Shown: positions 6,884 through 29,200, counted from the first letter of the stretch. The stretch is 64,000 nt of DNA from Setoptus koraiensis (GCA_048013815.1 CM106586.1:9176001-9240000), one strand, 5' to 3'. Made by a program: numbers and translations. The notes: a model not told the origin generated them from the sequence alone.

Positions 6884-8068
6884 TCAATAGTTGAATCGTC
6901 TACCGAATTTATCTGTAAAACCCTCAAAAATTTCTTCTAGAGAGTCCTTTAGAAAGCGTCGATACGCCGAACTTGACTCGTCCATCTTGTTGCGTTTCAC
7001 TAGATAATAGTCTCTCTTGCTGAGTCGTCTTCCTGCTTTTAGCAATGCATTCAGCATGCAAATTCTGTCGTTGCACCATTCATCCGATTCGTCGTCGAAA
7101 TGATACTCGACATCTTCGTTGTACTGATCGACCCACTTCATCCTCCAATCCACATCCATTTTAATTCGCTGTGGCCTTGGCCAATCGTCTGGCAATGGAG
7201 ACGCCAGCCATGGATCTGTTTGGAGGTTGCCTCTAAGAACGAGCTCTTCCAGGTCCTTGCACGCCATCATCATGTCAGACACAATAGTAATCCAATTATC
7301 TCCCACAGAGTATAGCAATCGTTTCAAATTTTTACGAGCCAGGACCAAAGGTAACCATTCATCATCAGCGCCTAGTTCTAAATGGGACACACAGGTGAAT
7401 TCATTTTAATAGTTAAGATCAACCTGACCAGTCGATACAATAAATTTGAAATTTACTTACTTTTAGGCACATGGTTCAATGTAGGGAAAATATTCTTCTC
7501 GTATGTTGAGATACTCAAGAGCAAATGTCTTGGGAATTGGGGCCAGAAACTGTTCTGTGTTGTCGCGGGCACTCAGATACAACAATCGGTAGTGAGCAAC
7601 GTTCAGCATCATACTCAATTCCCATCTGTCGCCTAAGAATTTCACAGAGTCAATAGTGAGTGATGTAATTTTGTCACAAATAGTCACAATTCTAGTCAAT
7701 TGTCCGGGTCCAATAGACATTTTACTCAAATTCAAAGTTGTCAGCATGGCACAGTTGTCGGCGATGATTCCATGAGTGCCAGGTTTAATGCGATCAATAA
7801 CATTGACAAGATTGAGGCATCTCAATTGGGGCACTCTCTTCAACAGCCTTTCTAACACCTCTATGTCCGGTTGTCGTTGGAATTTTTGGCTGGTTTCGAT
7901 GTGTTTTAATCGGAATAAATGTTCGGCTACGATGCTATTGAGCGCCTTCGATACCATGGCCAGACGGCCCAGATCAACGATATCGGGTACATGGTCCATA
8001 ATACGAAGCCAGAGTTCGGCCGGCAAACAACTGTAAGATCTGTTTTCTTCCTCTTTGCTTTTCTCCAT
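6884..8068 (-). pseudogene. F-box/LRR paralog 1; exons 8068..7461 and 7377..6884; +1 frameshift and stop before the donor (probable pseudogene, or sequence error)
   Basis: F-box LPAELWLRIMDHVPDIVDLGRLAMVSKALN plus LRRs. Same 83-nt intron (7460..7378) as paralogs 2 and 3, but exon 1 is 608 nt rather than 607 and ends ...GCC TAA AA|GTAAGT. Confidence 0.65.
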
Positions 8069-8460
8069 GGTTTCCTTTTCTTGCACTTTTCTTCCGTGTC
8101 GACGTTATTATCAAATTCAATCATATTCAAATTATATTCCTAGACGCTAAATGTCGAGCAAATGTATAAATAAATGTGATACTGACATACAAACAACGAT
8201 GGATTTATAACGACGCGTGAGACATTATAATCTCAATAATCGTAGCTTTATCGCACCACGGAAACTTTTCAAATTTCATTGCAGGGGAATTCCATGGTTT
8301 GCGTGGGTTCGAAAGACGTGATGAACTTGCTTCGTTTGAGGCAGAAATGACAGTTTCAATTAGATGGAGAGAGCACAGGATAGGACATGTGACCAGTCAC
8401 GATGAGACAGCCACTCTTTATTGTAACTGACTAATGACTTGTGAGAAGATTGAAATTGAT

Positions 8461-8790
8461 ATCATGACAGGACAATTTAAACCTTATGAATTCGTCCATT
8501 CATGAATATCGTTGGACATTCATGAACCAATGGCTTCCGTCGTAATGACAACAATTTCTCCTGCCTCTTTCACAAGTAGCCTCGCAAAATTGCATCTAGC
8601 AATGGGATGGGCCAGAGAAACCGGATGTTGGCCGGCCAGTATAAGTTGTGTAATTTACAATTCAGCTTGTAGTGTCAATGAGTTGAGTTTAATAGCGATT
8701 TTATTGTGCTTCGGTGACAGCTGAAAAAATTGAAAAGATTCATTTAATGAAATGAAATCAAGATTGCAAAATGTCGCATAATAAAGTGAT
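8461..8790. repeat. Repeated non-coding ~300-bp module; copies at ~12117..12445 and ~22111..22385, partial at ~26098..26150
   Basis: Shared ATCATGAC.G..CAATT...ATGAATTC...TTCATGAA...AGAAACCGGA...GTGTCA.TGAGTTGAGT...GACAGCTGAA..GATTGAAAAGATT. No ORF is conserved across copies. Confidence 0.7.
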
Positions 8791-9013
8791 AATTGACATT
8801 TTCTGTTGGCGATCGCGCGTATCACCCACCTAATTTTCTCTGTTTGCCTGGGGCATTGCTCAGCCCAATCAAGTGAGAATTACTGCCCTCGTTGCGGTTT
8901 AGACTGGTTCGATTGCACGAAAATTTATTGCGTAGCTAGGCGCCGCCACTTATAGATTGGTCGGCTTTATCAGCATCTTGCGTTGCTCAAAATTAGCCGC
9001 ACTTCCGGTCGTC

Positions 9014-10230
9014 TTAGTGGCCTCTGCATTCCGGCTCACAGTCCTCACAGTCCGCGTAATATCGTCGGCCTAATCGATCTGTAATACCCTCAAAAATATA
9101 ATCTGGCGACTCGAGAAAGCGTTGATACTCATCACTTGACTCGTCCATCTTGTGGCGTTTCACTAAATAATAGTCTCTCTTGCTGAGCCGTCTTCCTGCT
9201 CTTAGCAATGCATTCAGCATGCAAATTCTTGCGTTGCACCATTCATCCGATTCGTCGTCGAAATGAAACTCGACATTTTCGTTGTACTGATCGACCCACT
9301 TCATCCTCCAATCCACATCCATTTTAATTCGCTGTGGTCTTGGCGAATCGTCTGGCAATGGAGACCCCAGCCATGGATCTGTCTGGAGGTTTCCTCTGAG
9401 AACGAGCTCTTCCAGGTCCTTGCACGCGCTCATCATTTCAGGCACATTATCTATCCAACAATCCCCCATAGAGTAAAGCAATCGTTTCAAATTTTTACTA
9501 GACAGGACCAAAGGTAACCATTCATTATTGGTGCCTTCACCTAAATGCGACACAGAGGTAAATTCGTTTTAATGGTTTAGATCAACCTGACCAGTCTATA
9601 CAATCATTTTAAAATGTACTCACGTCTAAACATCCCATAGGAATAATATACTTGTCGTATGTCGAGATACTCAAAAGCAAAAGTCTTGTCTCTGAGAATT
9701 GGGGCCAGAAACTGTTTTGTGTTGTCGCGGGCACTCAGATACAACAATCGGTCGTGAGCAGCGTTCAACATCATACTCAATTCCCATCTGTCGCCTAAGA
9801 ATTTCACAGAGTCAATAGTGAGTGATGTAATTTTGTCACAAATAGTCACAATTTTAGTCAATTGTCCGGGTCCAATAGACATTTTACTCAAATTCAGAGT
9901 GGTCAGCATGGCACAGTTGTCGGTAATGATTCCATGAGTGCCAGGTTTAATGCGATCAATAACATTGACAAGATTGAGGCATCTCAATTGGGGCACTCTC
10001 CTCAATAGCCTTTCTAACATCTCTATGTCCGGTTGTCGTTGGAATTTTTGGCTGGTTTCCATGTGTTTTAATCGGAATAAATGTTCGGCTGCGATGCTAT
10101 TGAGCGCCTTCGATACCATGGCCAGACGGCCCAGATCAACGATATCGGGTACATGGTCCATAATACGAAGCCAGAGTTCGGCCGGCAAACAACTGTAAGA
10201 TCTGTTTTCTTCCTCTTTGCTTTTCTCCAT
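9014..10230 (-). CDS. F-box/LRR paralog 2; join(complement 10230..9624, 9540..9014), 377 aa
   Basis: F-box motif and LRR units (LRCLNL, LTTLNLS, ITSLTID, LLYLSAR, LEELVLRG). An 83-nt phase-1 intron GTGAGT...TTTAG joins ORFs 9604..10248 and 9014..9553 in frame (MFR-R-EGTNNEW). Confidence 0.88.
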
Positions 10231-10870
10231 GGTTTTCTTTTCTTGCACTTTTCTTCCGTGTCGACGTTATTACCAAATTCAATCATATTCAAATTATATT
10301 CCTAGACGCTAAATGTCGAGCAAATGTATAAATAAATGTGCTAATGACATACAAACAACGATGGATTTATAACGACGCGTGAGACATTATTATAATCTCA
10401 ATGATCACAGTTTTATCGCACCACGGCAACTTTTCAAATTTCATTGCAGGGGAATTCCATGGTAGAGCTCGAAAGACGTGATCAATTTGCTTCGTTTCAG
10501 GCACAAATGATAGTTTTATTCAGATAGAGAGACGGGCCGGATAAGATGTGAATGAGTTACAAGTTACGCATATACACACCACGGATTTGTTATCACTGAT
10601 TGGCATTATCGACGGCAAATGTAAAACGACACGAGTAAAAATGGAAATCGCTCCTGATAAATCAATGCTAATTTGATTTTTGGCAAACGAGTCAACATCA
10701 CATCTCGAATAGTGAATTGTTTGAAATTGTTTAGGACAACAGATGTAAAGTAGATTCAAATAGGATAGATGTTTTTTTTAAGTGTAGTCAGCGTTGCACT
10801 AATTAGATTTTAATATTTGTCAATCAAGATCAATCAAAAGAACATCAAAAGAATATTACTGAGTAGCGGC

Positions 10871-11916
10871 ATGAAGCTGTTTGATACTACTGTACCAACC
10901 GAAAAGGCCACTTTTGCATTGGTCAGTATTGTCTCAGATTTTTCGCTAATGAAACAATTACCAGAAAACAATAATTACTCACTATCTCTTAACTGTCTGT
11001 ATGTATAGGGTTGCTTCTGGGAAGTGGAGGCTATTTTCGGCGCGGTGAGGGGCGTCATCAGAGTGCGAAGTGGCTACACGGGAGGAAGTAAGCTCAATCC
11101 AACAGAGGATGATCTCGGCGATCACACGGAGGCAGTGGACATTGATTACAATCCGAAAGTAATCAAGTACAAGGTACTGCTGCTAACAATATCACTTATG
11201 ATCACGAGACAATCGCAATCCAACCGGATCACAACTGACAATTGACTTGTAAATTCACCATCTAATATTCAATATGTAACATTTTACTGATTTCAATTTA
11301 ATATCTGCAGAGGCTGCTGGATATGTTTTGGGCCAATCACGATCCGACACACTATTTCAAGCGACAATACATGTCGGCCATATATTATCACAATGACAGA
11401 CAGAGGATACTGGCCGAGAAAACTAGGCGCCGACAAGCGAAAATGATAGAGTATGCCAGCAAGGAAATCAAGACACAAATCGCGCCGGCGTGCACATTTT
11501 ACAATGCCGAAGATCATCATCAGAAGTATCGATTGCGTAACGTTTGTGCAGAATTATTCGACTCACTGCATTTGACAAGTGGACAACAGGTGATTGAGTC
11601 TCACGTTGCGGCTCGACTAAATAGCTGGATAGCCCAGTACGGTTGGCACGATTACTATTGGAATCCCGATTTGGGAAGGAAACAAAACCCATGTACCGCT
11701 CGGAGAAGTTCATGGACTAATATGAAATATCATGGTTTGAGCGACAGCCTGTCGGATGGGCGCCTGGTGGATCCCGTTGTTCCTAAGGGGTGCGAAAACA
11801 CTTGCCGGAATGGTTGGTGTAGACGAAAAAGTCGATTCATGCAAGAGCAATACCATGCCAAACGTTTCGGTCGAAGTCCGAGTTTTGATGGGTTCATTCG
11901 AGCCATAGTGTATTAA
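10871..11916 (+). CDS. MsrA: Peptide methionine sulfoxide reductase A paralog 1; join(10871..10921, 11009..11173, 11311..11916), 273 aa
   Basis: EKATFAL|GCFWE..., SGYTGG, GDHTEAV, NHDPT, RQYMSAIYYH, FYNAEDHHQKY. GT-AG introns of 87 and 137 nt, both phase 0. Confidence 0.92.
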
Positions 11917-12668
11917 AAAATATTTATATTCATTTATAACTTGTGTGATTGCTTATGTGACTAACATGTATTCAGTTTAGAGGTTATTTCATTTGCGACT
12001 CGAACTCAACCAGCCCAGGTGACTCACCACCAGACTATCTCACCTCGCTGTTCTCTCTCCAATTTGTCCCATCGTTACTTGAGATCCAAGTTTTGTGATT
12101 GTTATCAATGGTAACTTATCATGACGGTGCAATTCTAGCCCCCAGAATTCATCTATTCATGAATATCGCCGGATGAATCATGAATTCACGACTTCTGTGG
12201 TAAATAACAAACTGTGGTTTTTCCGGCTCCTTTCACAAGCAGCCTCTCTGATATGTCAGAGTTTCTCAGAAACCGGAAGTAAGCCCAGCAAGTTTAAAAT
12301 GTGCAATTTACTATTTAGCTTGTAGTGTCAATGAGTTGAGTTTAGTAACAATTTTATTGTGCTTTGGTGACAGCTGAAAAGATTGAAAAGATTCATTTAA
12401 TGAAATGAAATCAAGATTGCAAAATGTCGCATAATTAATTGATAATTGACATTTTCTGCTGGCGATCGCGTGTATCACCCACCTAATTTTCTCTGTTTGC
12501 CTGGGGCATTGCTCAGCTCAATCGAGTACTCAGTGGACAAGCTAGAGTTTGAGGATCACTGCCCTCGTTGCGGTTTAGACTGGTTCGATTGCACGAAAAT
12601 TCATTGCGTAGCTAGGCGCCGCCACTTATAGATTGGTCGGCCATATCGGCATCTTGCGTTGCTCAAAG

Positions 12669-13906
12669 TTAGGCCATCTCCCAGTCGCCTAGGTGGCCTC
12701 TGCATTCCGGCTCACAGTACTCACAGTCCGCGTAATATCGGTAGCCTACTCGATCTGTAATACCCTCAAAAATTTTTTCTGGCGACTCGAGAAAGCGTTG
12801 ATACTCATCACTTGACTCTTCCATCTTGTGGCGTTTCACTAGATAATGGTCTCTCTTGCTTAGCCGTCTTCCTGCTCTTAGCAATGCATTCAGCATGCAA
12901 ATTCTTGCGTTGCACCATTCATCCGATTCGTCGTCGAAATGATACTCGACATCTTCGTTGTACTCATTGACCCACTCAATTCTCCAATCCACATCCATTT
13001 TAATTCGCTGTGGTCTTGGCGAATCGTCTGGCAATGGAGACCCCAGCCATGGATCGCTCTGGAGGTTTCCTCTGAGAACGAGCTCTTCTAGGTCCTTGCA
13101 CACAGTCACCATTGCAACCACATTATCCATCCAATCATCCCCCGCAGAGTATAGTAATCGTTTCAAATTTTTACTTGCCAGGACCAAATGTAACCATTCA
13201 TTATTGGTGCCTTCACCTAAATGCGACACAGAGGTGAATTCGTTTTAATGGTTTAGATCAACCTAACCAGTCGATACAATAATTTTAAAATGTACTCACG
13301 TCTAAACATCCCATAGGAATAATATACTTGTCGTATGTCGAGATACTCAAAAGCAAAAGTCTTGTCTCTGAGAATTGGGGCCAGAAACTGTTTTGTGTTG
13401 TCGCGGGCACTCAGATACAACAATCGGTCGTGAGCAGCGTTCAGCATCATACTCAATTCCCATCTGTCGCCTAAGAATTTCACAGAGTCAATAGTGAGTG
13501 ATGTAATTTTGTCACAAATAGTCACAATTCTAGTCAATTGTCCGGGTCCAATAGACATTTTACTCAAATTCAAAGTGGTCAGCATGGCACAGTTGTCGGT
13601 GATTATTCCATGAGTGCCAGGTTTAATGCGATCAATAACATTGACAAGATTGAGGCATCTCAATTGGGGCACTCTTTTCAACAGCCTTTCTAACACCTCT
13701 ATGTCCGGTTGTCGATGGAATTTTTGGCTGGTTTCCATGTGTTTTAATCTGAATAAATGTTCGGCTACGATGCTATTGAGCGCCTTCGATACCATGGCCA
13801 GACGGCCCAGATCAACAATATCGGTCAGATGGTTCATGATACGAAGCCAGAGTTCGGCCGGCAAGCAACCATAAGATCTGTTTTCTTCCTCTTTGCTTTT
13901 CTCCAT
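12669..13906 (-). CDS. F-box/LRR paralog 3; join(complement 13906..13300, 13216..12669), 384 aa
   Basis: Near-identical to paralog 2, with the same 83-nt phase-1 intron (13299..13217). Confidence 0.88.
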
Positions 13907-14592
13907 GGTTTTCTTTTCTTGCACTTTTCTTCCGTGTCGACGTTATTATCAAATTCAATCATATTCAAATTATATAACTAGACGCTAAATGTCGAGCAAA
14001 TGTATAAATAAATGTGCTAATGACATACAAACAACGATGGATTTATAACGACGCGTGAGACATTATTATAATCTCAATGATCACAGTTTTATCGCACCAC
14101 GGCAACTTTTCAAATTTCATTGCAGGGGGATTCCGTGGTTTGCGTGGGTTCGACAGACGTGATGAACTTGCTTCGTTTGAGGCAGAAATGACAGTTTCAA
14201 TTAGATGGAGAGAGCACAGGATAAGACATGTGACCAGCCACAATGAGACAGCCACTCTTTATTGTAATTGACAAGTGACTTGTGAGAAGATTGAAAAGAC
14301 TAATTGTGCCGCATTAATTGTGGCTTCTACGCGGGAATCACTGGGCCCCAATCGTCCTATATCGTCTTTTACACAGTCAGCGGGCTGTCATTCAAAATTT
14401 AGAAATTGTTGGCCTCCATTACAGAAACGAAAGAGAAGCGAAATTTGGCTGTCATATGTACCGTTCGAAACAGTTTCTGAACATCGCATGTATTCTCGAA
14501 TAAAATGCATTTACAGACACTTAATGGTCGGACCCGTGGGCCTCGGGAGGGCCTCAGTCTGGTCCGGCGCACATTATAAACTTATGAAAAAA

Positions 14593-15394
14593 TTATCTGT
14601 TTTGAGGAGTCAATCTACTCTTGAACCATTCGTCTTTTTCTCGTCGTTTTTCCGCTAAACGCTCATCCCTTTGGATGCGGTTTAGGCTTGGTTGCGGATG
14701 TTTCCTGATGAAAATTATAAGCACGGTAAAGAAAAGAACGAAACCGACAACTACGGCTGCTGCTACCGCTAATTCTTTCGGAAGAGGCATATGATGTGCA
14801 TGTGTATCCCACGGATAATGGGTGACTGCGTGATGACCAACGGCTGCCCCACTGTGTACGACAGCACCAGCGAATTGTACATCTCGCTCAGGATCTTCCT
14901 CTCTTGCCATCAATGATTGCTTGATGGACTCATCGAACACGGATAATTTCAGATATTTCGCCAATAAGCGTTCGGCGCCAGCACGTTTCAACAGCCAACC
15001 GGACAGACCCTTTGATTGCGTGTAGCACTTTAGGTCGGCATCAAACGAATCGAAGATGTCTGGCTGCTCGAATTTGTGCACCGGATCACTAACGATCTCG
15101 TCGGGTGATTCTTTGGTGGTGTTGACGATGAAAATCCGTTCGTCGTTCACTATTTCCCTGTCGAGTTTGTCCACTACATCGCTGTCTAAATCTAGATTTG
15201 CTTGCACAATGAGAACACCTTGGCAATATTGAACGGCTTGTATCCAGTTGAGAAGTCTCACATTTTTGCTTAAGCTTTTTTCTAGATCGCCCGTGTCGTC
15301 GCGTGCCAGATATCCCTTCATGGCCAACAGCGGAATGGTGTAAATGGATGCTCGTGCATATCGCTCTATTATTTTGCAAGCTTTCTTAAGTTGG
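14593..15394 (-). pseudogene. 5'-truncated duplicate of the novel membrane-protein gene at 22460..23956
   Basis: High identity to the C-terminal half (QLKKACKIIERY...TM...EKDEW). Homology stops at 15394 (AAGTTGG), where it joins F-box 3'-flank sequence also found at ~19025. No signal peptide; an in-frame stop lies just upstream. Confidence 0.75.
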
Positions 15395-15732
15395 ATTTCT
15401 CCAGCTTCTTACAAGCCGAATACAGGTCTTCTTACCTGTAACCTGGTTGCGAGGAACAGCGATTGTCGATGATGAATTGAGCTGCGTTGCCGATGGGTTT
15501 ACCCAGCTGGGTCGACCCCGGGGTTGAGTTGGGTGGGTCGACCCTGTGAGTCACATCTACCCACTGGGTTGAGCGGCTGAGTAACCCAACCCAGTGGGCG
15601 AGCCTCGATCACTGACATTGAAGCCGCCGAAATACGGTCGTACGCTCGGCGAATGTTTGCTCGTATGACGCCAGCTCCGGATTCGCTAGCCAATCGAACA
15701 GCCAAGAATATTGCGAAAATCTTGTGCCCAAA

Positions 15733-16797
15733 TCATTCCTCACTCGGATCGATGTCGGAGAACTCTTCTAGAAAGCGTTGATACGCCCAACCTGGCTTGA
15801 CCATCTTGTGGCGTTTCACTAGATAGTAGTCTCTCTCGCTGAGCCGCGATCCTCTTCTGAGCCAATAATTCAAACTGACAATCCTCTCGTTGCACCATTC
15901 ATCCGATTCGTGCTCGAAATGATACTCGGCTGTTTCGTTGTAATCTTTGATTTTTTTTTCTCTCCAATCCAGCTCCAATTTGATTCGTGGCCTAGGCAAG
16001 TTGGCTGGCCAGTCGAAGGCCATCCAACAAAGCCATCCCTCTGTCAGGTCTGTCCCTTTGATGACGAGCTCTTCCAGGTTCTTGCAAGCCATCACTGTGT
16101 GAGTCACATCAGAGCCACACCAAGACCCCATGGAACATAGCAGTCGTCTCAAATTTTTACTAGAGCTACTCACAGGAAACCATATATCCAGGTGACTGGG
16201 ATAATAACGATCAAAACTTTCGCATCGTATGTCGAGATACTCAAGAGCGAAACTCCTGCCTTGGAGACTAGAGGCGAGACGCTGTTTTGTATTGTCGCGC
16301 GCACTCAGATACAACAATCGGTCGTGAACAACGTTCAACATCATGCTCAATTCCCATCTGTCGCCTAAGAATTTCACAGAGTCAATGGTGAGTGATGTAA
16401 TCTTGTCACAAATAGTCACAATTTTAGTCAATTGTCCGGGTCCAATAGACATTTTACTCAAATTCAAAGTGGTCAGCATGACACAGTTGTCAGTGATGAC
16501 TCCATGTGTGCCAGGTTCAATGCGCGTAACATTGATAAGATCGAGGCATTTCAATCTGGGCACTCTCTTCAACAGCCTCTCTAACACCTCTATGTCCGGC
16601 TGTCGCGAGAAGTGTTCGCTGGCTTGTAATCGTCTCAATCCAGATAAATGTTCGCTCACGATGCGATTGAGTGCCTTGGACACCATGGCCAGACTGCCCA
16701 GATCAACGATATCAGGTAGATGGTTCATGATACGAAGCCAGAGTTCGGCCGGCAAGCAACCATAAGATCTGTTTTCTTCCTCTTTGCTTTTCTCCAT
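15733..16797 (-). CDS. F-box/LRR paralog 4, intronless, 354 aa
   Basis: Single ORF with F-box (LPAELWLRIMNHLPD), LRRs and the shared C-terminal WREKKI..Y..HFEHESDEWCNERI..RDYYLVKRHKM block. Confidence 0.9.
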   Translation of the reverse strand: MEKSKEEENRSYGCLPAELWLRIMNHLPDIVDLGSLAMVSKALNRIVSEHLSGLRRLQASEHFSRQPDIEVLERLLKRVPRLKCLDLINVTRIEPGTHGVITDNCVMLTTLNLSKMSIGPGQLTKIVTICDKITSLTIDSVKFLGDRWELSMMLNVVHDRLLYLSARDNTKQRLASSLQGRSFALEYLDIRCESFDRYYPSHLDIWFPVSSSSKNLRRLLCSMGSWCGSDVTHTVMACKNLEELVIKGTDLTEGWLCWMAFDWPANLPRPRIKLELDWREKKIKDYNETAEYHFEHESDEWCNERIVSLNYWLRRGSRLSERDYYLVKRHKMVKPGWAYQRFLEEFSDIDPSEE

Positions 16798-17158
16798 GGT
16801 TTTCTTCTTTTACTGCTACTTTTTTCAGTGTCGACGTTATTAACAAATTCAATCATATTCAAATCATATTCCAAGACGCCTCCTGTCGAGGAAATGTATG
16901 AATAAATGCGATGAGGATGTACAAACAACGATGGATTCATAACGACATTTGTGACATTATTGCACGCAAGAGCATAGTAGTTTGAGCGCACCACGGCGAA
17001 GCGTCATTTTCGACTCCGTTGCAAGGGATTTGCAGGTGGTTTAGGTGAGTTACGTAATGAACATGCTGCGATTGAGGCAGGAATGATTGTTTTGATTAGA
17101 TAGAGAGATGGGACAAAGTTACAAGCTGCTCATTTAGACACCGTTGATTTGTTATCAC

Positions 17159-17474
17159 TAGTGTGGCGGAAAAAACTACTTTAATACAAGGTGTTCAATT
17201 CGTTTAAGACAATTGGATTTTTAAACACATGTGTTTTAAATGTATTTAACGCATAAAGGGTTTAAACCTTTCTAAAAATGTCTCATTCAAAAAAAGAGTG
17301 AGTTTTTTATTCCGAGAAAAATGTATTTTACTGTCTCAAACTCGAAATAAAAGACACTTTAAGACGGGTTTAAACCCTTTTTGCGTTAAATACGTTTAAG
17401 ACACATTTGTATTGAAGTGTACTGAATTCTGCCATATAAAAGAAATGTGTTTTAGACGGTATTCCGCCACACTA
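17159..17474. mobile_element. hAT-like MITE, 316 bp
   Basis: Perfect 13-bp TIRs (TAGTGTGGCGGAA 17159..17171 / TTCCGCCACACTA 17462..17474). 8-bp TSD GTTATCAC (17151..17158 and 17475..17482). Internal ~48-bp inverted repeat (~17221-17268 vs ~17367-17412). Empty sites with a single GTTATCAC at 10589 and 20677. Confidence 0.9.
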
Positions 17475-17482
17475 GTTATCAC

Positions 17483-18514
17483 TGATTGGCATCATCGACA
17501 ACAAATGTAAAACAACACGAGTAAAAAAAAATGAAAAACGCCGCTGATAAATTAATACTAATTCAGTTCTAGCTAGGCTTTTTGTCTCTCTTTTTGAAAC
17601 TAGTCTAGTTCAACAACTCCACGCTTGGTTTATCATATTTCGAATAGTGAATTGTATGAAATTATTGGCGACAGCCAAAGTAAAGTAGATCTGAATAGGA
17701 CAGGTTATTCGTGAACATGGTCACTGTTGCACTTATTTGATTTCGATATTTATCAATCCGGGTCATTCAAAACAATGGCGTCCAACATGAGTCACCTTAA
17801 TCCGACTGTGGCAACCGAAAAGGCCACTTTTGCATTGGTCAGTATTGTCTCAGATTTTTCGCTAATGATAAACTTTTAATGAAACGATCGACAGACAACG
17901 ATAATTACCCACTATCTCTTAACTGTCTGTATGTATAGGGTTGCTTCTGGGAAGCGGAGGCTCTTTTTGGTGCCGTAAGAGGCGTCAGCAGAGTGAGAAG
18001 TGGCTACACGGGAGGAAGTAAGCTTAATCCGACCGAGTATGATCTTGGCGATCACACAGAGGCAGTAGACATTGATTACAATCCGAAAGTAATCAAATAC
18101 AAGGTACTGTTGCAAACAATATCACTGATCATCAAGAGACAATTGCAATCTGACAGATCACAACTGAATTCAAATTAACTATCTTTTATCCAATATTTAA
18201 TATCCATAAATTTAAATTTAATAATATCTCTAGAGGCTGCTGGATATGTTTTGGGCCAATCACGACCCGACATACAATTTCAGGCGACAATACATGTCAG
18301 CCATATATTATCACAATGACAGACAGAGGATGCTGGCCGAAAAAACTAAGCGCAGACAAGCGAAAATGACACAATATGCCAGTAGGGATATCAAGACACA
18401 AATAGTGCAGGCGTGTACATTTTACAATGCCGAAGATTATAATCAGAAGTATTATTTGCGCAACGTTTGCACAGATTTATTTGACTCTATGCAATTCACA
18501 AGTGGACAACAGGT
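17483..18514 (+). repeat. ~1-kb near-identical segment shared with ~20685..21713 (MsrA2/MsrA3 upstream region, introns and 5' CDS)
   Basis: Introns and promoter match almost base for base apart from small indels. Divergence begins abruptly after GGACAACAGGT. Confidence 0.85.
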
Positions 18515-18764
18515 AATTGAATCGCAACTTGCGGCTCGACTCAATAGCTGGACAGCCCAGTACGGATTGCACCAATTCCGGTATGAGCGCGGACGTCAAG
18601 TTCACAACTTACACGCATCAGGCCGTGAATTTGTAAGAAGTCAAGGTTTCAGGAGAGACCTGGAGCCCTTGGTGGCCGATGTTGTTTGGTCTGGCAGCAA
18701 AGGTGATTGCCGAAATGAGTGGTGCTTACGAAAGAACAAAGCTTACCACAAACAAAGGAGTTAA
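17775..18764 (+). CDS. MsrA: MsrA paralog 2; join(17775..17837, 17939..18103, 18234..18764), 252 aa
   Basis: Same exon structure and motifs as paralog 1 (GCFWE, GYTGG, DHTE, HDPT, QYMSAI); AEDYNQKY variant. Confidence 0.9.
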
Positions 18765-19298
18765 TCAAGCGGTCTTTCATTAGAACCGTTCTATGTTTAT
18801 TTCTTCATACTTATGTACATGTTCGCGCAAATAACATGCATCCAATTTTTTGTATTTCGTTTGCGACTCGAACTCAACCATCCCTAGCTACTCTGCTGCT
18901 ACCCCTTCTATGCTCTATCTTTTTCACTTTCTTCTATGCCTCACAATCAAGTTTCTGTCGGTCAATCTCATTTTTTCATTCTTCTCATCCATCTATAGCA
19001 TTCGGGCGTCAGCAAGGATTCCTCCAGCTTCTTACAAGCCGAATACAGGTTTCACCTGTAACCTGGTTGCGAGGGACAACGATTGTCGATAATGATTCGA
19101 GCTGTGTCAGGCTTAATGTGATCGGTTCATCTACTCATGTAATATCGTCGGATGAATTATGAGTTCACGACTCCGGCTCGGTTGCCCTCGACAATGAAGG
19201 CTCGGGTCGTCTGCCCGACAGTCACTTGCTTGTATGACGCTCGCTCCAAATTCGCTACATCGAACAGCCAAGAATGTTCCGAAAATCTTTTGCCCAAA

Positions 19299-20372
19299 TC
19301 ATTCCTCGTCCCGATCAATATCTGGAAACGCTTCCAAGAGGCGTCGGTAGGCCCAACCTGACTTGACCATCTTGTGGCTTTTCACTAGATAGTAGTCTCT
19401 CTCGTTGAGCCTCGTTCCTCTTTTGAGCCAATAATTCAAATGGACAATTCTGTCGTTGCACCATTCATCCGATTCATGCTCGAAATGATACTCGGCTGTC
19501 TCGTGATATTCTTGGATCCTTTCTCCTCTCCAATCCACTTCCAATTTGATTCGTGGCCCGGACCAGTTTGCTGGCCTCTTGAAGGCTTCCCAAACAAAGT
19601 GACCCCTTGTCAGGTCTGTCCCTTTAAGAACGAGCTCTTCCAGGTTCTTGCAATCCTTCGCTATGCGAGTCACATCACGTTCATCCCAAAACCACATGGG
19701 ACATAGCAATCGTTTCAAATTTTTACTAGAGCTAATCACAGGAAACCATATATCCGGGAGACTGGGAAAATAACGATCAAAACTTTCGCATCGTATGTCG
19801 AGATACTCAAGAGCGAAACTCCTGCCTCGGAGACTAGAGGCGAGAAGCTGTTTTGTATTGTCGCGCGCACTCAGATACAACAATCGGTCGTGAACAACGT
19901 TCAACATCATGCTCAATTCCCAGTCGTTGCCTTCAAATTTTACACCGTCAATGGTGAGTGATGTAATCTTGTCACAAATAGTCACAATTTTAGTCAATTG
20001 TCCGGGTCCAATAGACATTTTACTCAAATTCAAAGTGGTCAGCATGACACAGTTGTCAGTGATGACTCCATGTGTGCCAGGTTTAATGCGTGCAATGACG
20101 TTGGCAAGATTGAGGTACCTCAATTGGGGCATCCCCTTCAATAGCTTCTCTAGCACCTCTATATCCAGCCCCCGCCGGAAGTTCCCGCTGGATTCTGACT
20201 GTTCCAATCCAGATAAATGTTCCGCTACTATACGATTGAGCGCCCTGGAAACCATGGACAAACGGCATAAATCAACAATATCTGGTAGATGGTTCATGAT
20301 ACGAGGCCACAGTTCGGCCGGCAAGCAACTGTAAGACATATCCTCTCCTTTTTTTCTTTCCTCCATGCTCAT
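19299..20372 (-). CDS. F-box/LRR paralog 5, intronless, 357 aa
   Basis: F-box LPAELWPRIMNHLPDIVDLCRLSMVSRALN, LRRs and the shared C-terminal block; most similar to paralog 4. Confidence 0.9.
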   Translation of the reverse strand: MSMEERKKGEDMSYSCLPAELWPRIMNHLPDIVDLCRLSMVSRALNRIVAEHLSGLEQSESSGNFRRGLDIEVLEKLLKGMPQLRYLNLANVIARIKPGTHGVITDNCVMLTTLNLSKMSIGPGQLTKIVTICDKITSLTIDGVKFEGNDWELSMMLNVVHDRLLYLSARDNTKQLLASSLRGRSFALEYLDIRCESFDRYFPSLPDIWFPVISSSKNLKRLLCPMWFWDERDVTRIAKDCKNLEELVLKGTDLTRGHFVWEAFKRPANWSGPRIKLEVDWRGERIQEYHETAEYHFEHESDEWCNDRIVHLNYWLKRGTRLNERDYYLVKSHKMVKSGWAYRRLLEAFPDIDRDEE

Positions 20373-20976
20373 TTTGCCAGTATCGATGTTATTACCAAAA
20401 TGACATCCTGTGAGGAAACGTTGATATCAATATAATAATACACGTTCGGATATACAAGCAACGATAGATTTATACCGACACGTGAGATGCTGGTATTAGC
20501 TAAATTTTATTAGTTTTGTTGCACCACGACGACGCACCTTTTCCAATTCTATTGCAGGGGAATTCCAACGCACGCATGGGTTAGAGCTACGTAATGAACA
20601 TGCTGCGATTGAGGCAGAAATGACAGTTTCGATTAGATAGAGAGATGGGCAGGATAAGATGGGACACCACCGGATCGTTATCACTAATTGGCATCATCGA
20701 CAACAAATGTAAAACAACACGAGTAAAAATGAAAAACGCCGCTGATAAATTAATACTAATTCAGTTCTAGCTAGGCTTTTTGTCTCTCTTTTTGTTTGAA
20801 ACTAGTCTCGTTCAACAACTCCACGCTTGGTTTATCATATTTCGAATAGTGAATTGTATGAAATTATTGGCGACAGCCAAAGTAAAGTAGATCTGAATAG
20901 GACAGGTTATTCGTGAACATGGTCACTGTTGCACTTATTTGATTTCGATATTTATCAATCCGGGTCATTCAAAACA

Positions 20977-21996
20977 ATGGCGTCCAACATGAGTCACCTT
21001 AATCCGACCGTGGCAACCGAAAAGGCCACTTTTGCATTGGTCAGTATTGTCTCGGATTTTTCGCTAATGATAAACTTTTAATGAAACGATCGACAGACAA
21101 CGATAATTACCCACTATCTCTTAACTGTCTGTATGTATAGGGTTGCTTCTGGGAAGCGGAGGCTCTTTTTGGTGCCGTAAGAGGCGTCAGCAGAGTGAGA
21201 AGTGGCTACACGGGAGGAAGTAAGCTTAATCCGACCGAGTATGATCTTGGCGATCACACAGAGGCAGTAGACATTGATTACAATCCGAAAGTAATCAAAT
21301 ACAAGGTACTGTTGCAAACAATATCACTGATCATCAAGAGACAATTGCAATCTGACAGATCACAACTGAATTCAAATTAACTATCTTTTATCCAATATTT
21401 AATATCCATAAATTTAAATTTAATATCTCTAGAGGCTGCTGGATATGTTTTGGGCCAATCACGACCCGACATACAATTTCAGGCGACAATACATGTCAGC
21501 CATATATTATCACAATGACAGACAGAGGATGCTGGCCGAAAAAACTAAGCGCAGACAAGCGAAAATGACACAATATGCCAGTAGGGATATCAAGACACAA
21601 ATAGTGCAGGCGTGTACATTTTACAATGCCGAAGATTATAATCAGAAGTATTATTTGCGCAACGTTTGCACAGATTTATTTGACTCTATGCAATTCACAA
21701 GTGGACAACAGGTGATTGAATCTTACGTCGCGGCTCTATTAAATAGCTGGATAGCCCGGTACGGTTTGCACTGCCTCCGGTATGAGCGCGGTTACGAATC
21801 CCGATACGGGTATAGGTATGGCTATCTATACAGATTCTTGGACGATTTTGGTATCTTGGACGTTCATCAAACTGAGATCGCTAGTATTGTTCGTCAAGCC
21901 ACCAAAAAGTGTTGCCGCAATAGATGGTGCAGACGAAAAAATAAATACTACAATGAACGAATGGACATAAGCAACTCAGAATCATTGTCAGATTAA
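20977..21996 (+). CDS. MsrA: MsrA paralog 3; join(20977..21039, 21141..21305, 21433..21996), 263 aa
   Basis: Same structure as paralog 2, with an identical N-terminal ~175 aa and a distinct C-terminus. Confidence 0.9.
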
Positions 21997-22459
21997 CAAG
22001 TTACCTGTGCAAACATGTTAGTTGTTCGATATAAAATAAAATGAAATATCCAACTCTTTTGTCTGGGCAAACGTACCAATTAATAAATGTTGTCAGTTTT
22101 TTGGTTGTTATCATGACGGGACAATTTAAATATTATGAATTCGTTCATTCATGAAGATCCTTGGACATTCATGAATCACTGGCTTCCGTCGTAAATGAGG
22201 ACAATTACTCCCGCTTAAATCACAATGACATCTAGCAATGAGATAAGTCAGAGAAACCGGATGTCAGCCAGCCAGTACATGTATGGGCTGTCTAATTTAC
22301 AATTTAGCTTTTAGTGTCAGTGAGTTGAGTATAATAATAATTTTATTGTTGTTAGGTGGCGGCTGAATAGATTGAAAAGATTAATTGTGCCGCATCAATT
22401 GTGAGATCGTGGCGTATTAGATCGTCTTTCACACAGTCGGTGGCCCATCATTAAAAAGT

Positions 22460-23956
22460 TTAGTTTTTTTTAGTTTCGAGCCATTCATCTTTTTCTTGTC
22501 GTTTTTCCGCTAAACGCTCGTCTATTTGAATGCGGTTAAGATATGGTTTCGGATTTTTCCTGACAAAAATTATAAGCATGGTAAAGAAAAGGACGAAACC
22601 GACAACCACGGCTGCTGCTACCGCTAATTCTTTTGGAAGAGGCATATGATGTGCATGTGTATCCCACGGATAATGGGTGACTGCGTGATGAGCAACGGTT
22701 GCCCCATTGTGTACGACAGCACCAGCGAATTTTACATCTCGCTCGGAATCTTGTTCGCTTGCCATCAATGATTGCTTGATGGACTCATCGAACACGGATA
22801 ATTTCAGATATTTGGCCAATAAGCGTTCGGCGCCAGCACGTTTCAACAGCCAACCGGACAGACCCTTTGATTGCGTGTAGCACTTTAGGTCGGCATCAAA
22901 CGAATCGAAGGTGTCTGGCTGCTCGAATTTGTGCACCGGATTATCAGCGATCTGATTGGGTGATTCTTTGGTGATGTTGACAATGAAAATTCGTTCGTCG
23001 TTCACTATTTCCCTGTCGAGTTTGTCCACTACATCGCTGTCTAAATCTAGATTTGCTTGCACAATGAGAACACCTTGGCAATATTGAACGGCTTGTATCC
23101 AGTTGAGCAGTCTCACATTTTCGCTTAAGCTTTTTTCTAGATCGCCCGTGTCGTCGCGTGCCAGATACCCCTTCATGGCCAGCAGCGGAATGGTGTAAAT
23201 GGATGCTCGCGCATATCGCTCTATTATTTTGCAAGCCTTCTTAAGTTGGTAGAATTGCTCGATTGACTGTTGCGTATTGAATGTCATTCTGATTGATACG
23301 TCTGAATCTGGCGTGGGCTTCAACGAATCTGCCAGAATGATATTCTCGGCCTTGTTGAACACTGTCGGAGTGAACTTCATGGCCACACTGAGCACCTTTC
23401 TCATGGGCACACTCAATTTCTGAAAGCCTCTGTCATCAATTGGAGCTTGCGACACCTCAGTGATCTTGGCCAGACTAGCCACCAGCGCTTCGTCTTTCTC
23501 TGCTGACTTCAGTTTTTCTGCCAGCGACTTTTTACAAGTCAATATAACTTGACCTGCAAACAATCGGAAAAACGGAACTAGTCGGTGGGTGTGCTTCCGT
23601 TTGAGATGCTTTCCACGACTGGCATTGGCTTTCAATTGTTTATCAACAGCCAACAATTGATCCGCAAATCCTGGTTCGCATACCGACGAAGTTTCTGCTT
23701 GCTCTACGACACCTTGCAACAATTTCAGATCAGAGTATCCATCTACACTGCGAAGACACTTGTTCAATATTTCCTCCTGTTCTTCTCCCAGCCAGCTAGA
23801 AAAGTCCGCCAAAAATAAGAATGAGACAACCTTATCTAGTCTCCTGACCAAATCAACACATTGTGGCGTATTTATTGCATTGACTTTGTTGTGGAATGCA
23901 ATTTCTCCAACACACATCAGACACAACATCAACAGGCTGCTTCGCGACACGATCAT
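22460..23956 (-). CDS. Uncharacterised type-I membrane protein, 498 aa, intronless
   Basis: N-terminal signal-like MIVSRSSLLMLCLMCVGEIAF, Cys-containing ectodomain, His-rich juxtamembrane stretch, C-terminal TM (LAVAAAVVVGFVLFFTMLIIFV) and short basic tail. Confidence 0.85.
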   Translation of the reverse strand: MIVSRSSLLMLCLMCVGEIAFHNKVNAINTPQCVDLVRRLDKVVSFLFLADFSSWLGEEQEEILNKCLRSVDGYSDLKLLQGVVEQAETSSVCEPGFADQLLAVDKQLKANASRGKHLKRKHTHRLVPFFRLFAGQVILTCKKSLAEKLKSAEKDEALVASLAKITEVSQAPIDDRGFQKLSVPMRKVLSVAMKFTPTVFNKAENIILADSLKPTPDSDVSIRMTFNTQQSIEQFYQLKKACKIIERYARASIYTIPLLAMKGYLARDDTGDLEKSLSENVRLLNWIQAVQYCQGVLIVQANLDLDSDVVDKLDREIVNDERIFIVNITKESPNQIADNPVHKFEQPDTFDSFDADLKCYTQSKGLSGWLLKRAGAERLLAKYLKLSVFDESIKQSLMASEQDSERDVKFAGAVVHNGATVAHHAVTHYPWDTHAHHMPLPKELAVAAAVVVGFVLFFTMLIIFVRKNPKPYLNRIQIDERLAEKRQEKDEWLETKKN

Positions 23957-24269
23957 TTATTTGCCTAGCTGTTCCTGGTTTATGGCGCAACAAACTATCT
24001 GAATGAGTTGGTTTAATGATGGACTTATTCGGTCAATTTGTGATCATTACTTTTCGCTCGGCCCTTTGATTGCTTCGATTGGCAGAGATCGCCCACTATT
24101 TATACTTCGGATTCGCGTCATGAAATTACAGCAAGCTTACAGGTTCGCATACGAATCTATTCTTGTCTATTCCGAAAATAGTTCAATCATGAGACATTTA
24201 TACGAAAAGATCCAATCGACATCTTTCCATTTGTCGATTTAAATGTCACCAAAATCAACTAACAATCAT

Positions 24270-24621
24270 TGTGCTGCTAGTCGATATAGCCCCACAAAAT
24301 GGTCTGTGTCTCGGGTTGGTTACGACGATCATCATTTGCATGGCATCTAACCAGTTTCAGCCACATGATGCCGCAATTGTCGGGCCGGAAATTCTCTGAT
24401 GAAATTCTCTGTGAGGCCTCTTAATACTTAATACTAAACACCTGACCTTCAGTCAGAAATCTTGGTTTTGCGAAGTACCGTTTGATGAGGCGAGAATAGT
24501 CAAATGAAGAGGGATAATTTGGCGAATGTTTCAAAGTAATAGAGGCCGTGGTGCGATCATATGTTAATATTTGCACAAACAAGTGAGTGACTTGTGCATG
24601 ACAACCGATACAACTTTTCAA
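24270..24621 (-). pseudogene. Possible decayed PEX6 (peroxin-6) N2-domain fragment
   Basis: SITLKHSPNYPSSFDYSRLIKRYFAKPRFLTEGQVFSI resembles remembered human PEX6 [38 protein letters not shown]. It is interrupted by a TATTAAG tandem duplication and stop, followed by IMWLKLVRC...GYID* in another frame. Confidence 0.45.
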
Positions 24622-24972
24622 CGAGAGTTACAGTTTTCGGTTGGATATTCATTGGGTGAATCGTATGCTCGTCAATCTCTAGTTCAATACTGTTCGAATT
24701 ATCCGCCAGTCAATCGACTCACTCACTTGTCAGGGAAAACCGTTCAATTTGTTCATCGCATTGTTCGTCCTTGATGCAACCTTAACTAAAAAATCGAGCA
24801 TGGATTATTGGCGTCGCAGTCGAGACTGCCATATCACGTACAGTAGACTGCTGCACGCATCGTTACAACCAACGATTACATTTTTGGGTTGTTACACAAC
24901 TGCATGCTTCAATTACATTATTGTATTAATACTTCGTGTTTGCAAATTTATTTACACGACAAGTGAAAAGCA

Positions 24973-25824
24973 ATGGATAAATTACCCAACGAACTCTGGC
25001 TGAAGATCTTCAGCTATTTGAACGATTTCAAGGACCATGGCCGACTTTCAATGGTATCCAAGGAAATGAACTCACTGGTCTCCTATCATCTCGGCAAGCT
25101 AAAGAGGTTCGACGCGGGAGATCTTGGATTTGGAGACATCACGACTTTAGAGCCACTTTTCATGAAGCTCTCCAATTTGAGAGAAGTCGACCTCAGTGGA
25201 TATGTCCTGGAATTTCCTAAGGACTCGCACCGCTACTTGAGTGACAATTGTCCCATGTTGACCGATTTGGAACTACGAAGTATAGAATTCGCTCCGTCAG
25301 AGCTATTTAACCTCGTGACCAAGTGCCGGCATGTGACTACGCTCCGGATTAATTCCATCGTACTGGAAAGTGAGGATGAGTTAAGCAGGCTGTTACCTGA
25401 GGTCAAATCAAGACTCCTCCATCTTGATATGCCCTTTATTGATGGGCAACGTAATCTTGTCGTCGAAGGAGAGTATAACCTGCGATCGCTTGATATCAGA
25501 CATACTTTGCATGACGATTATCTAGATTTAATATGTGCCTGCCCGGAACTTAAAGTGTTGTCGGCTTCTTTAGTCTCAAGAGAATCGCTTGACAAGGTAA
25601 TCGCCAGCTGCCCTAAACTTGAGAGCTTCACATTGGAGGGATATCACCAAGATATTCCACAGCTTGAGACACCAAAAATCTATGTACGAAATATATTTAG
25701 ACAAAGTATACATCATGGATTTTCCGATGACGACGACCGTGAGAAATACTACGATCCATACCCCCCCGACGTGGAAACCCGGTACTCGGAAACTCCTTCC
25801 GATCGTACATGGTCGAATAGTTAA
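24973..25824 (+). CDS. Divergent F-box/LRR paralog 6, intronless, 283 aa
   Basis: MDKLPNELWLKIFSYLNDFKDHGRLSMVSKEMN F-box; LREVDLSG, LTDLELRS, LRSLDIR and LESFTLEG LRRs. Confidence 0.88.
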   Translation: MDKLPNELWLKIFSYLNDFKDHGRLSMVSKEMNSLVSYHLGKLKRFDAGDLGFGDITTLEPLFMKLSNLREVDLSGYVLEFPKDSHRYLSDNCPMLTDLELRSIEFAPSELFNLVTKCRHVTTLRINSIVLESEDELSRLLPEVKSRLLHLDMPFIDGQRNLVVEGEYNLRSLDIRHTLHDDYLDLICACPELKVLSASLVSRESLDKVIASCPKLESFTLEGYHQDIPQLETPKIYVRNIFRQSIHHGFSDDDDREKYYDPYPPDVETRYSETPSDRTWSNS

Positions 25825-26285: not shown

Positions 26286-29200
26286 TCAGTGTTGGGCGCT
26301 TGTGGCGGTCTTGTTTGGCGGAGGCCAGGGATAGGCGACACCACGAACTAAATTGATTGCCTTTATGAATTCCTGTTTCGGTTCAACTCGCTCACCTGTT
26401 GTGCTGGCCGTTGTGTCTTGCTGCTGGTCAACAGGTTTGCTAGTTGTTGTGTCATTTCTGTTTGTTTGCATCGATGCTGTTGTTGTTGTTGTTGTTGCCA
26501 CTGGTGTCGTTGGCCTCTCTGGATTCATTTCACTCGGTTCCCATAGATTGTCTATTTGGCTTTGTTCTGTCACAATGGTTGTTGCCTTGGTTGTTGTTGT
26601 TGCATCGTTCGTGAAAAAATCACTCAATGTAGATGGCGGTGCAACCGTTGTAACGGTTGTGTCTGTTGTTGTTGTTGTCGTCGTCGGTATGGTGGTTGTT
26701 GTGCTTGTTGTTGTTGAACTTGATCTGTATTCATGTGGCCGCTGTTGTTGGTGCTCGCTGTCGTTATTAATTATATCGTTTGATTTATCCCTCATGGGCA
26801 CAAAACCTCCATCGCTTCCGGTGCTCCGTCGACCGGCCATCGAGCGCATACCTCGCATTTGTTGATTGTCCGCCTGTTTATCATCTGTTGTTGTTGTTGA
26901 CATACGATTGTTGTTGCTGTCTCTGCTGACCAGAGTGTAAGCCGACTCCATGAGCAGCTTGTCCGGGGCCCCATTGGCGTTCTTGGCCACTGGGCGCTGC
27001 TCTTTGCTGGCGTCGCCCTGATAACTTTGATGAATCTCTGGCTGTCGGGCACGGTGCTGATCGGGTGAGGGATATCTTTTGTCATTGTCGTAAATGGCCC
27101 CATTTTGGGCCCGCTTGCTCGCTTGTTGTTTGTCGCCACCGGAAGCATCGGTGCGATTGTGAGCGACCGTGAGGCGTTCGTTTTCTCTGCTCGGCTCAAC
27201 CACTGGGGCCATGTTCGAGTAGTCGGTGTACAAGTGGGCCGAGTTTGACACTTGCTGCTGCCGATACTGATCGTCCGCACTCATTTGCATGTTGTCCGAC
27301 GGTGGCGCCGCGCCCTCGGGCGACGACCACGTTCTCACTAGCTCGTGACCCGAGCTTTGGCTGTCCGCCGGCATCATCAAGTTTTGCGGGCCGTCCGCTG
27401 GCATCATCAAGTTTTGCGGGCCGTCCGCTGGCATCGTCGGGTTTTGCGCCGCAAACGAGGCCGCCGCCGCCGCCTGAGCGTATCGGGCCTGTTGTTGTTT
27501 GGTTGCGCGATACGGTTGCTGTTGGTGGTAGTTGCCGTGATGAAACTGCTGGTTCCACTTGGAGTTCAAGCGGCGCGATGGGCCGCTCACCGGGGCCAGC
27601 CGCACCCGATGCGGCTCGTCGTCGCTGCCGAAATTGATGGCCTCGAAGAATTTGCTCGAACGCAGCGCCTGATCCTGTATCATGCGCGACAAATCCATTG
27701 CGCTCGCGCCGGGCCCGAAATCCATTTTTGGCTTCAGTTTCTTCTCGGTGCCCGCGACAATTGCGCCCGTCAGGGCGGACGCGGCCGACGAAGCCACCGA
27801 CGACGCGGCAGAGGCGGCCGCCGATGTTGCCGCGGCGCTCAACACTGCGCGAGCCGGCGATTTAGGCGCCGACGGCCTACTACTGGCCACACCGGCCAGC
27901 GGCCTGGCCGCGTGTCCGCCGGGCACCATCGATCTGAGCACGTTGCGCAGACGACTTCCGCTCGGGGCGCTTTCGGTGCCCTTGTTGCCCGTGGGCCGCC
28001 GTCTGAGGCCGCCAAACAGCCGGTTTGCACCGCTGCCGGAACCCGCGCCGCCGCCCGACGACGACGACGATGGATTTCGGTCGCGATTGTTTCTGTTGGC
28101 TCTGGCCAATGCAAACGGCAACATCATTCCGGCCATTTGCATCATACTTGGCGGCGGCGGAAACGGAATATTGGGTATCTGGGGCGCGTTGGGTATGCTG
28201 GGTATGTTGGGCATGGAGGGCAGGCGACTTTGCAGTGAGCGCATTTGATCGCGCAATTGTCTCGACAATCGCACCATAGCGGTCACATTGTTTGCGTCGG
28301 GCCCGTTGACGGACGCACTAAGACCGCTGTGAACACCGCGCAACGTGTTCATGTTTGCCAGCGCATTCAGTCCGTCGTCGTCCCAGTTGATGGGGCCCGA
28401 AATGGGGCCCACGCCGCTCGAACCGATGAACGGGGCACCGACCGCTGCCTGTTGGCCCTGGGCGGCGGCCGAGGCAAATCCGCCTATGGGAATGGTTTGT
28501 TTTGCGGGCGACGCGGACGCCATTTGCATGTGCTGCTGTTGCGCCAAACTGGCCATTGAGGGCCGCTGATAGGTGGCGACACCGTACGGTGGCGACATCA
28601 CCTTAACGGATGGCTGCCAGTTGAGTTGTTGCTGTTTGTGGCCCGTCCCGCCTTGCACGCTGTCCGCCAGCACGGGATTATGCGAATACCCGAGCGGATA
28701 CGCGACGACGGGCCGCTGCGCTACCGTGTGCTGCTGCTGAGATTGCTGGCCCAACATGAGCCAGGGCGCCTTGTTCTGCTGGCCGTTGGGCTGGCTTGAA
28801 TCGGGCGACATGCTGCTGTGCGATACCGTTGGCTCGCTCGAGGCCCAACTGATACCGGGCCCGTACTGATGGGGCCGCTTGTCGGGCTTGCCGTCGCCCT
28901 GCTGGGGCTCCTGGAAATACTGACCGTGCGGCCGCTGGGGCCGGTTGAGGGCGCTGTAGGCGGCCTCTGACCATTGCTGGGGCGACATGGGGAACTCGAG
29001 TTGTTGCTGCTGCTGGCCCGGCGGGCTGGCGTAATTGGCCAGCATCATGGCGGGCTCCGTGGACGCCACACTGTTGAACGGGCCGGCGCCCGCGGGATAG
29101 TGACCGGCAAACGCAAACTGCGACGGAATGGAGCCCATGCCCATGTCCGGCCCGTAGACGCTGGCGTCGGTGTTGGGGTTGAAATTGACATAGCCGCTAA

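Follow-up and report, generated by a model that had tools for sequence, protein, structure and literature searches.

A tandem array of head-to-head F-box/LRR and MsrA genes in the mite Setoptus koraiensis: neighbours copied together

When two unrelated genes recur side by side in an array, are they partners, or were they only neighbours when the segment was copied? The question is raised by a 64,000-nucleotide stretch of the genome of the mite Setoptus koraiensis (GCA_048013815.1, CM106586.1:9176001-9240000), hereafter the window, to whose first letter all positions refer. Open reading frames and a Pfam scan place six genes for F-box/leucine-rich repeat (LRR) proteins (FBX1 to FBX6) at 6884-25824, together with three genes for MsrA with an intact active site (MsrA1 to MsrA3) and a gene that we call X, present as a full and a truncated copy. 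An earlier interpretation, made by inspecting this DNA alone (below, the sequence-only reading), suggested that the F-box/MsrA pair may be a co-regulated repair-or-degrade unit for oxidised proteins, with a shared bidirectional promoter, the two genes diversifying together, for example under oxidative pressure from the host; it named passive co-duplication of neighbours as the alternative. We find that this alternative fits best. With a probability of roughly 0.78, the locus is a lineage-specific tandem array that arose by repeated segmental duplication of two oppositely transcribed neighbours and was reshaped by loss, transposon insertion and gene conversion.

Layout and copying of the F-box/MsrA module

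The gene order, orientations and spacings first proposed are reproduced by the open reading frames and the Pfam matches. FBX1 (6884-8068, minus strand, ATG at 8068) is an F-box/LRR paralogue. FBX2 (10230-9014, minus strand; modelled exons 10230-9624 and 9540-9014, 377 amino acids (aa)) stands head-to-head with MsrA1 (10871-11916, plus strand, 273 aa), the spacer of this module lying at 10231-10870. FBX3 (13906-12669, minus strand; exons 13906-13300 and 13216-12669, 384 aa) is without an MsrA partner, and the truncated X (15393-14593, minus strand) comes next. Two more head-to-head modules are made by the intronless genes FBX4 (16797-15733, minus strand, 354 aa) and FBX5 (20372-19299, minus strand, 357 aa), paired with MsrA2 (17775-18764, plus strand, 252 aa) and MsrA3 (20977-21996, plus strand, 263 aa) respectively. 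X (23956-22460, minus strand, 498 aa) is also in a head-to-head pair, without any MsrA, its partner being FBX6 (24973-25824, plus strand), an intronless and divergent F-box/LRR gene of 283 aa. From ATG to ATG the F-box/MsrA distances are 640 base pairs (bp) for FBX2/MsrA1, 977 bp for FBX4/MsrA2 and 604 bp for FBX5/MsrA3, with homologous spacers, in agreement with the 0.6-1.0 kb claimed beforehand. The three modules thus all have the divergent starts, less than 1 kb apart, that are one mark of a co-regulated bidirectional pair.

The five modules were compared by self-comparison, by finer alignments and with sliding windows. The alignment is unbroken between 9655-11649 and 19791-21771, and the FBX4/MsrA2 module aligns in the same way once a transposon is removed from it. 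Homology therefore runs without interruption from gene through spacer to gene in three modules, so that on at least two occasions the whole module, from F-box gene to MsrA, was duplicated in one block, which bears out the co-amplified module of the sequence-only reading. The transposon is a hAT-like miniature element of 316 bp (17159-17474), with perfect terminal inverted repeats of 13 bp and an 8-bp target-site duplication, GTTATCAC (17151-17158 and 17475-17482). It is a single copy in the window and is contained in the 977-bp FBX4/MsrA2 spacer.

The boundaries of the duplicated units differ. On the F-box side about 320 bp of spacer are common to FBX1-5, while the approximately 300 bp on the MsrA side are common only to the three MsrA-bearing modules. 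In FBX1 and FBX3 homology ends at the same point (8455 = 14296) and then jumps into differing parts of the segment downstream of MsrA; no remnant of MsrA was found at FBX1 or FBX3 and the MsrA-side half of the spacer is gone as well. The truncated X corresponds to the last 260 codons of X (15393-14614), with the signal peptide missing, and is 94% identical to X in nucleotides (nonsynonymous divergence dN 0.048, synonymous divergence dS 0.136). Because it sits between FBX3 and FBX4, at least one duplication took in part of X.

Uncoupled divergence of the paired genes

If the members of each pair had diversified together, their divergence should run in parallel. It does not. MsrA2 and MsrA3 are 99.5% identical over 17483-18514 and 20685-21713 (1032 bp), where they differ by five substitutions and three small indels. 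This tract, probably a gene-conversion tract, takes in the MsrA-side spacer, the first two exons, both introns and the exon 3 core. It has sharp edges: the left flank, which begins at the transposon site (the element sits exactly at the left edge), is 65-80% identical, and on the right, inside exon 3 at the variable tail, the two copies become unalignable. Right beside this tract FBX4 and FBX5 differ by 20-35%. Along these two F-box genes dS takes the successive values 0.72, 0.57, 0.12, 0.06, 0.00, 0.13, 0.34, 0.26 and 0.64: the first two values belong to the first 100 codons, the range 0.00-0.13 to codons 81-260 and the range 0.26-0.64 to the end. The F-box region of FBX4 and its proximal spacer are nearer to FBX1-3 (82-91%) than to FBX5 (70-81%), and over the F-box region FBX4 groups with FBX2, in conflict with the relationships of the MsrA genes, i.e. 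(1,(2,3)). Since the F-box genes are mosaics, no single F-box tree can be set against this MsrA tree. Mosaics with such sharp edges at neutral sites are typical of unequal exchange or gene conversion; two genes that diverge together would not leave them.

In the middle of the F-box genes, where LRRs are encoded, about 200 bp (16290-16500 and its equivalents in FBX1-3 and FBX5) are 89-99% identical across FBX1-5, even at synonymous sites. Such a block would be a hot spot of conversion or else be constrained at the nucleotide level.

Selection was estimated by the pairwise Nei-Gojobori method. For the F-box genes dN/dS is 0.47-0.63 over the whole gene, 0.19-0.42 in the N-terminal half and 0.53-0.82 in the C-terminal half; for MsrA it is 0.25 in the core and about 1 in the tail, where the alignment is unreliable. 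No gene-wide dN/dS above 1 was detected by these estimates. Nor are the ratios near 1 throughout, a result that the sequence-only reading had named as speaking against it. The term "rapidly evolving", which had been applied to the array, thus holds only in part, given the pairwise values of the F-box genes. By these pairwise ratios the constraint on the F-box genes is relaxed or mixed, whereas the MsrA core is clearly under purifying selection; joint diversification is not demonstrated.

As a further rival explanation, the modules might be alleles or mis-joined copies of one another and not true tandem paralogues. A near-identical tract of 1 kb is indeed of the kind that assemblers duplicate. 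Four sequencing runs were compared with 16000-21999 (6000 letters, a segment that leaves MsrA1 outside). In one DNA run (X2) unitigs have a depth of about 93-114 where the sequence is unique and of 176-197 in the tract that MsrA2 and MsrA3 have in common; this twofold ratio taken alone fits either model. But between copies the flanks diverge by 20-50%, the 3' tails are unrelated, and a transposon and an intron are present in some and absent from others. The junctions moreover recur in Logan unitigs, which were assembled from raw reads of other runs; one of them, covering 18504-19798, crosses from MsrA2 to FBX5 with zero mismatches. Together with an RNA contig that bears MsrA2-specific bases, these structural differences and junction-crossing unitigs argue against the assembly or haplotype artefact that the sequence-only reading had named as a danger, and we consider such an artefact extremely improbable.

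That RNA contig comes from a small run of low depth (X7), the sole RNA run covering the segment. It matches 18326-18590 with one mismatch, and across 18515-18590 it has the MsrA2 base at 16 sites that differ from MsrA3. Another contig of this run skips 18104-18233, with GT..AG ends, which is intron 2 of MsrA2 (exon 2-3 junction). Thus MsrA2 is transcribed and spliced. The same run gave no contig from FBX4, FBX5 or MsrA3, and its contigs show presence, not absence. Of the doubt formerly attached to the transcription of MsrA2 and MsrA3, the part that concerns MsrA2 is lifted by a spliced and copy-specific contig, while for MsrA3 no contig was found in this one low-depth run.

The MsrA enzymes, the F-box/LRR proteins and gene X

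All three MsrA genes have three exons, canonical splice sites and open frames (MsrA1: 10871-10921, 11009-11173 and 11311-11916; MsrA2: 17775-17837, 17939-18103 and 18234-18764; MsrA3: 20977-21039, 21141-21305 and 21433-21996). Scores for the PMSR family (PF01625, cut-off 23.7 bits) are well over the threshold, 43 bits for exon 2 and 49-52 bits for exon 3. The nearest solved MsrA structures are PDB 7c13, 4u66 and 4lwj. GCFWE is present in the three proteins, and the GY.GG, DHTEA and RQYMS motifs align to 7c13 and 4u66; the catalytic Cys lies in GCFW, which corresponds to chain residues 15-18 of the solved enzyme, and the Tyr/Glu/Tyr positions of the sulfoxide pocket also align. The proteins have PMSR, GCFW, GY.GG, H.E and RQYMS in common with the MsrA of arthropods and other invertebrates (Drosophila Eip71CD type, PF01625), and they are 44-51% identical to insect and mite MsrA across about 180 residues. 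A search for close MsrA relatives found none, the best match to exon 3 being 55%. With intact catalytic residues and purifying selection acting on the core, MsrA1-3 have probably been retained as working enzymes.

They differ from other arthropod MsrA in their ends. After a conserved "AARLN" helix, the usual C-terminal region (PF20939, with a terminal Cys) is replaced by a tail of 60-90 residues (11640-11916, 18563-18764 and 21762-21996). These tails align neither to each other nor to other MsrA, yet they remain open for 60-90 codons; the MsrA3 protein equals MsrA2 up to about residue 171, beyond which the two tails are unrelated. Near the end of all three a C-R-N-x-W-C motif is found. No alignment is possible between the tails that carry it and the C-terminal Cys usual in arthropod MsrA, and its cysteines may be candidates for substitute resolving cysteines. 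Animals usually have one MsrA gene; three intact copies in tandem, with replaced C-terminal tails, are unusual for an animal.

The F-box genes had been called F-box/LRR genes from the start. The F-box part of this call stands on Pfam: the F-box-like family PF12937 (cut-off 24.3 bits) is matched by FBX1, FBX4, FBX5 and FBX6 with 25-37 bits, passing the threshold narrowly, and the corresponding region of FBX2 and FBX3 is about 80% identical to that of these positive paralogues. The LRR part is reached by another way, since all matches of Pfam LRR models to FBX1-5 stay under threshold. A profile built from the six FBX paralogues matches many LRR proteins, and the AlphaFold model of FBX4 (mean predicted local distance difference test score 73) has F-box helices, about eight strand-helix repeats and three C-terminal helices. 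With this model Foldseek returns SKP2, FBXL2 and TIR1 as best matches (E 1e-7), and also COI1 and FBXL17. An LRR solenoid is thus predicted after the F-box, and the genes are predicted to encode SCF-type F-box/LRR receptors. They resemble FBXL-type SCF receptors (SKP2, FBXL2, TIR1, COI1) in the N-terminal F-box followed by a curved array of about eight LRRs, although sequence identity to these structures is only 13-19% and FBX1-5 end in a helical region, about 90 residues long, that is private to them. FBX6 is 33-35% identical to FBX1-5.

Relatives of the family are few. An exact-sequence look-up of FBX4 found no record, and a word-based homologue search with FBX4 among 5.8 billion proteins gave no match. 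An exhaustive profile search returned one FBX6-like protein (50% identity), four proteins of 670-723 aa that match over their first 240-270 residues or so, and generic LRR proteins. One of the four (P0072), when scanned, has an F-box and a weak AAA_11 match. The nearest relatives are mite F-box/LRR proteins, then, some of them fused to UPF1-like modules. Judged from these searches the family is very private, an F-box/LRR subfamily with its own C-terminal region.

Not all members of the family are alike in structure. FBX1-3 contain a GT..AG segment of 83 nucleotides (nt) (7378-7460, 9541-9623 and 13217-13299) where the coding sequence of FBX4 and FBX5 is continuous. In our sequence-based model the full-length products of FBX2 and FBX3 require splicing of this predicted 83-nt intron (GTGAGT..TTTAG, compatible phase). 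The segment is a candidate case of intronisation or of a recently gained intron; the lineage is reported to have extremely few introns. In FBX1 there is in addition a 7-nt insertion, and an in-frame TAA (7463-7465) precedes the donor of the intron (7378-7460) by two bases; FBX1 is for this reason probably a pseudogene, or truncated to 201 aa.

The protein encoded by X belongs to no Pfam family; hydrophobic stretches, read by eye, make an N-terminal signal peptide and a C-terminal membrane helix likely. The only homologues are five proteins on Logan contigs (41-63% identity), and the three of these contigs that were looked up (L003, L004 and L005) belong to one public run. On this comparison X appears to be a private multi-copy family. 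Elsewhere in the window a tetraspanin, a bZIP factor and KH-domain and DnaJ-domain proteins are encoded, and the minus strand of 26286-32507 holds a single open frame of 2073 codons with 54-63% G+C (about 42% around it), for a low-complexity protein rich in Gln, Ala and Ser.

Adjacency or partnership

We looked for the F-box/MsrA pair outside the array. Only one annotated mite genome, that of Halotydeus destructor, gave a match; its locus has a single MsrA between MAP7-like and cystatin genes, with no adjacent F-box gene, and the synteny expected of a conserved pair is absent there. A gene for a DCAF15-like WD40 protein (a CRL4 substrate receptor; L002, 10442-11738) lies about 1.7 kb downstream of this MsrA, probably by coincidence. 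Logan contigs from one run of an apparently related mite carry an FBX6-like gene beside an RRM-like gene and a threonyl-tRNA synthetase gene, and X-like genes beside dymeclin or beside nothing. No MsrA or FBX1-5-like neighbours were found on them, but as the contigs are short and the genes possibly paralogues, the array is neither supported nor excluded in relatives. Literature searches found nothing on MsrA linked to a neighbouring F-box protein and nothing relevant on expansions of either family in eriophyoids; neither F-box nor Msr genes are mentioned in the paper on the Aculops lycopersici genome.

Under co-duplication the history of the locus would be the following. The module was probably copied by unequal crossing-over, some copies taking with them part of the downstream X. 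Two units have lost MsrA with the MsrA-side half of the spacer, FBX1 has gained its frameshift and early stop, and the small hAT-like transposon has inserted into one spacer. Conversion would have homogenised the core of MsrA2 and MsrA3, the middle of FBX4 and FBX5, and the 5' end of FBX4 with FBX1-3, leaving the rest diverged. Each gene appears to keep its own proximal half of the promoter region, hence the pairing would reflect adjacency at the time of copying and not functional coupling. Some observations nevertheless weigh against this history. Shared regulation of the pair would likewise lead one to expect three modules that keep a head-to-head arrangement of about 600 bp. The tracts of conversion leave out precisely the MsrA tail and both ends of the F-box genes, which selection for difference could explain. 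Finally, between the FBX1-3 and FBX4-5 groups short windows in codons 161-260 reach a dN/dS of about 0.9-1.4, values that are small-sample and confounded by conversion.

The repair-or-degrade pair would account for the three head-to-head genes 604-977 bp apart over homologous spacers, for the intact state of all three MsrA and the transcription and splicing of MsrA2, and for the raised dN/dS in the C-terminal half of the F-box proteins. But the pairing is conserved neither among the paralogues nor in the other species: two of the five genes FBX1-5, i.e. FBX1 and FBX3, have kept just the F-box half of the spacer without MsrA, FBX6 is paired with X, and Halotydeus has no such pair, to which the silence of the literature may be added. 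The divergence of the partners is uncoupled, the relationships of F-box segments being in conflict with those of MsrA, and the MsrA core is under purifying and not diversifying selection. The claim of two genes "diversifying together" as a co-regulated unit is not supported. That the one RNA run assembled MsrA2 and nothing of FBX4, FBX5 or MsrA3 points the same way, weakly in view of its depth. Within an array of duplicates, adjacency arises once and is then multiplied by copying, and does not amount to three independent observations of coupling; beyond this adjacency nothing favours the repair-or-degrade pair, which is unsupported and in our view quite improbable. A more specific form of partnership would be one of cognate pairs, in which the private C-terminal region of the F-box receptor reads the hypervariable tail of the neighbouring MsrA, selection keeping both parts different between modules while conversion homogenises the rest. 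It would agree with the finding that conversion halts precisely where the MsrA tail begins and leaves the two ends of FBX4 and FBX5 untouched; tracts ending at random would also produce this pattern, and we regard cognate recognition as very improbable.

Another account overlaps with co-duplication as to the origin of the array and differs only in the reason for retention: the MsrA copies would have been kept because more activity, or tail-variant activity, helps a plant-feeding mite, the F-box genes having hitch-hiked or expanded separately across the genome. The catalytic residues, splice sites and open frames of MsrA1-3 and the core dN/dS of 0.25 agree with it, as does the conversion that keeps two MsrA cores identical. 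The genome is moreover reported to be compact and intron-poor (PMC7738191), where duplicates might be expected to be purged. Yet two units lost MsrA, and support from expression or activity amounts to one transcript. A selected gain in dosage is thus possible, on the unlikely side; extra MsrA or tail-specific variants may be useful.

Co-duplication of neighbours places the locus among known lineage-specific tandem arrays, such as those of F-box genes in Caenorhabditis and plants, which evolve by birth-and-death and concerted evolution. Variable unit boundaries, a likely pseudogene and conversion mosaics are features in common, and dN/dS is likewise higher in the half presumed to bind substrates. 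In contrast to those expansions the present array is small, three of its six F-box genes are accompanied by a gene for an unrelated enzyme, and no gene-wide dN/dS above 1 was detected. We conclude that the array is real and dynamic and specific to its lineage, yet ordinary for a tandem array. What remains is mildly interesting: three intact MsrA genes with replaced tails, a private F-box/LRR subfamily, and conversion tracts that end at those variable parts.

Were the pairing functional, it would be a novel link, in a mite that parasitises plants, between targeted degradation and the mending of oxidised methionine. On the present evidence the locus shows, within a compact and gene-dense stretch, how tandem duplication, loss, gene conversion and the insertion of a transposon act together, and it carries a caution: repeated adjacency inside a duplicated array is no independent evidence that the neighbours are coupled.

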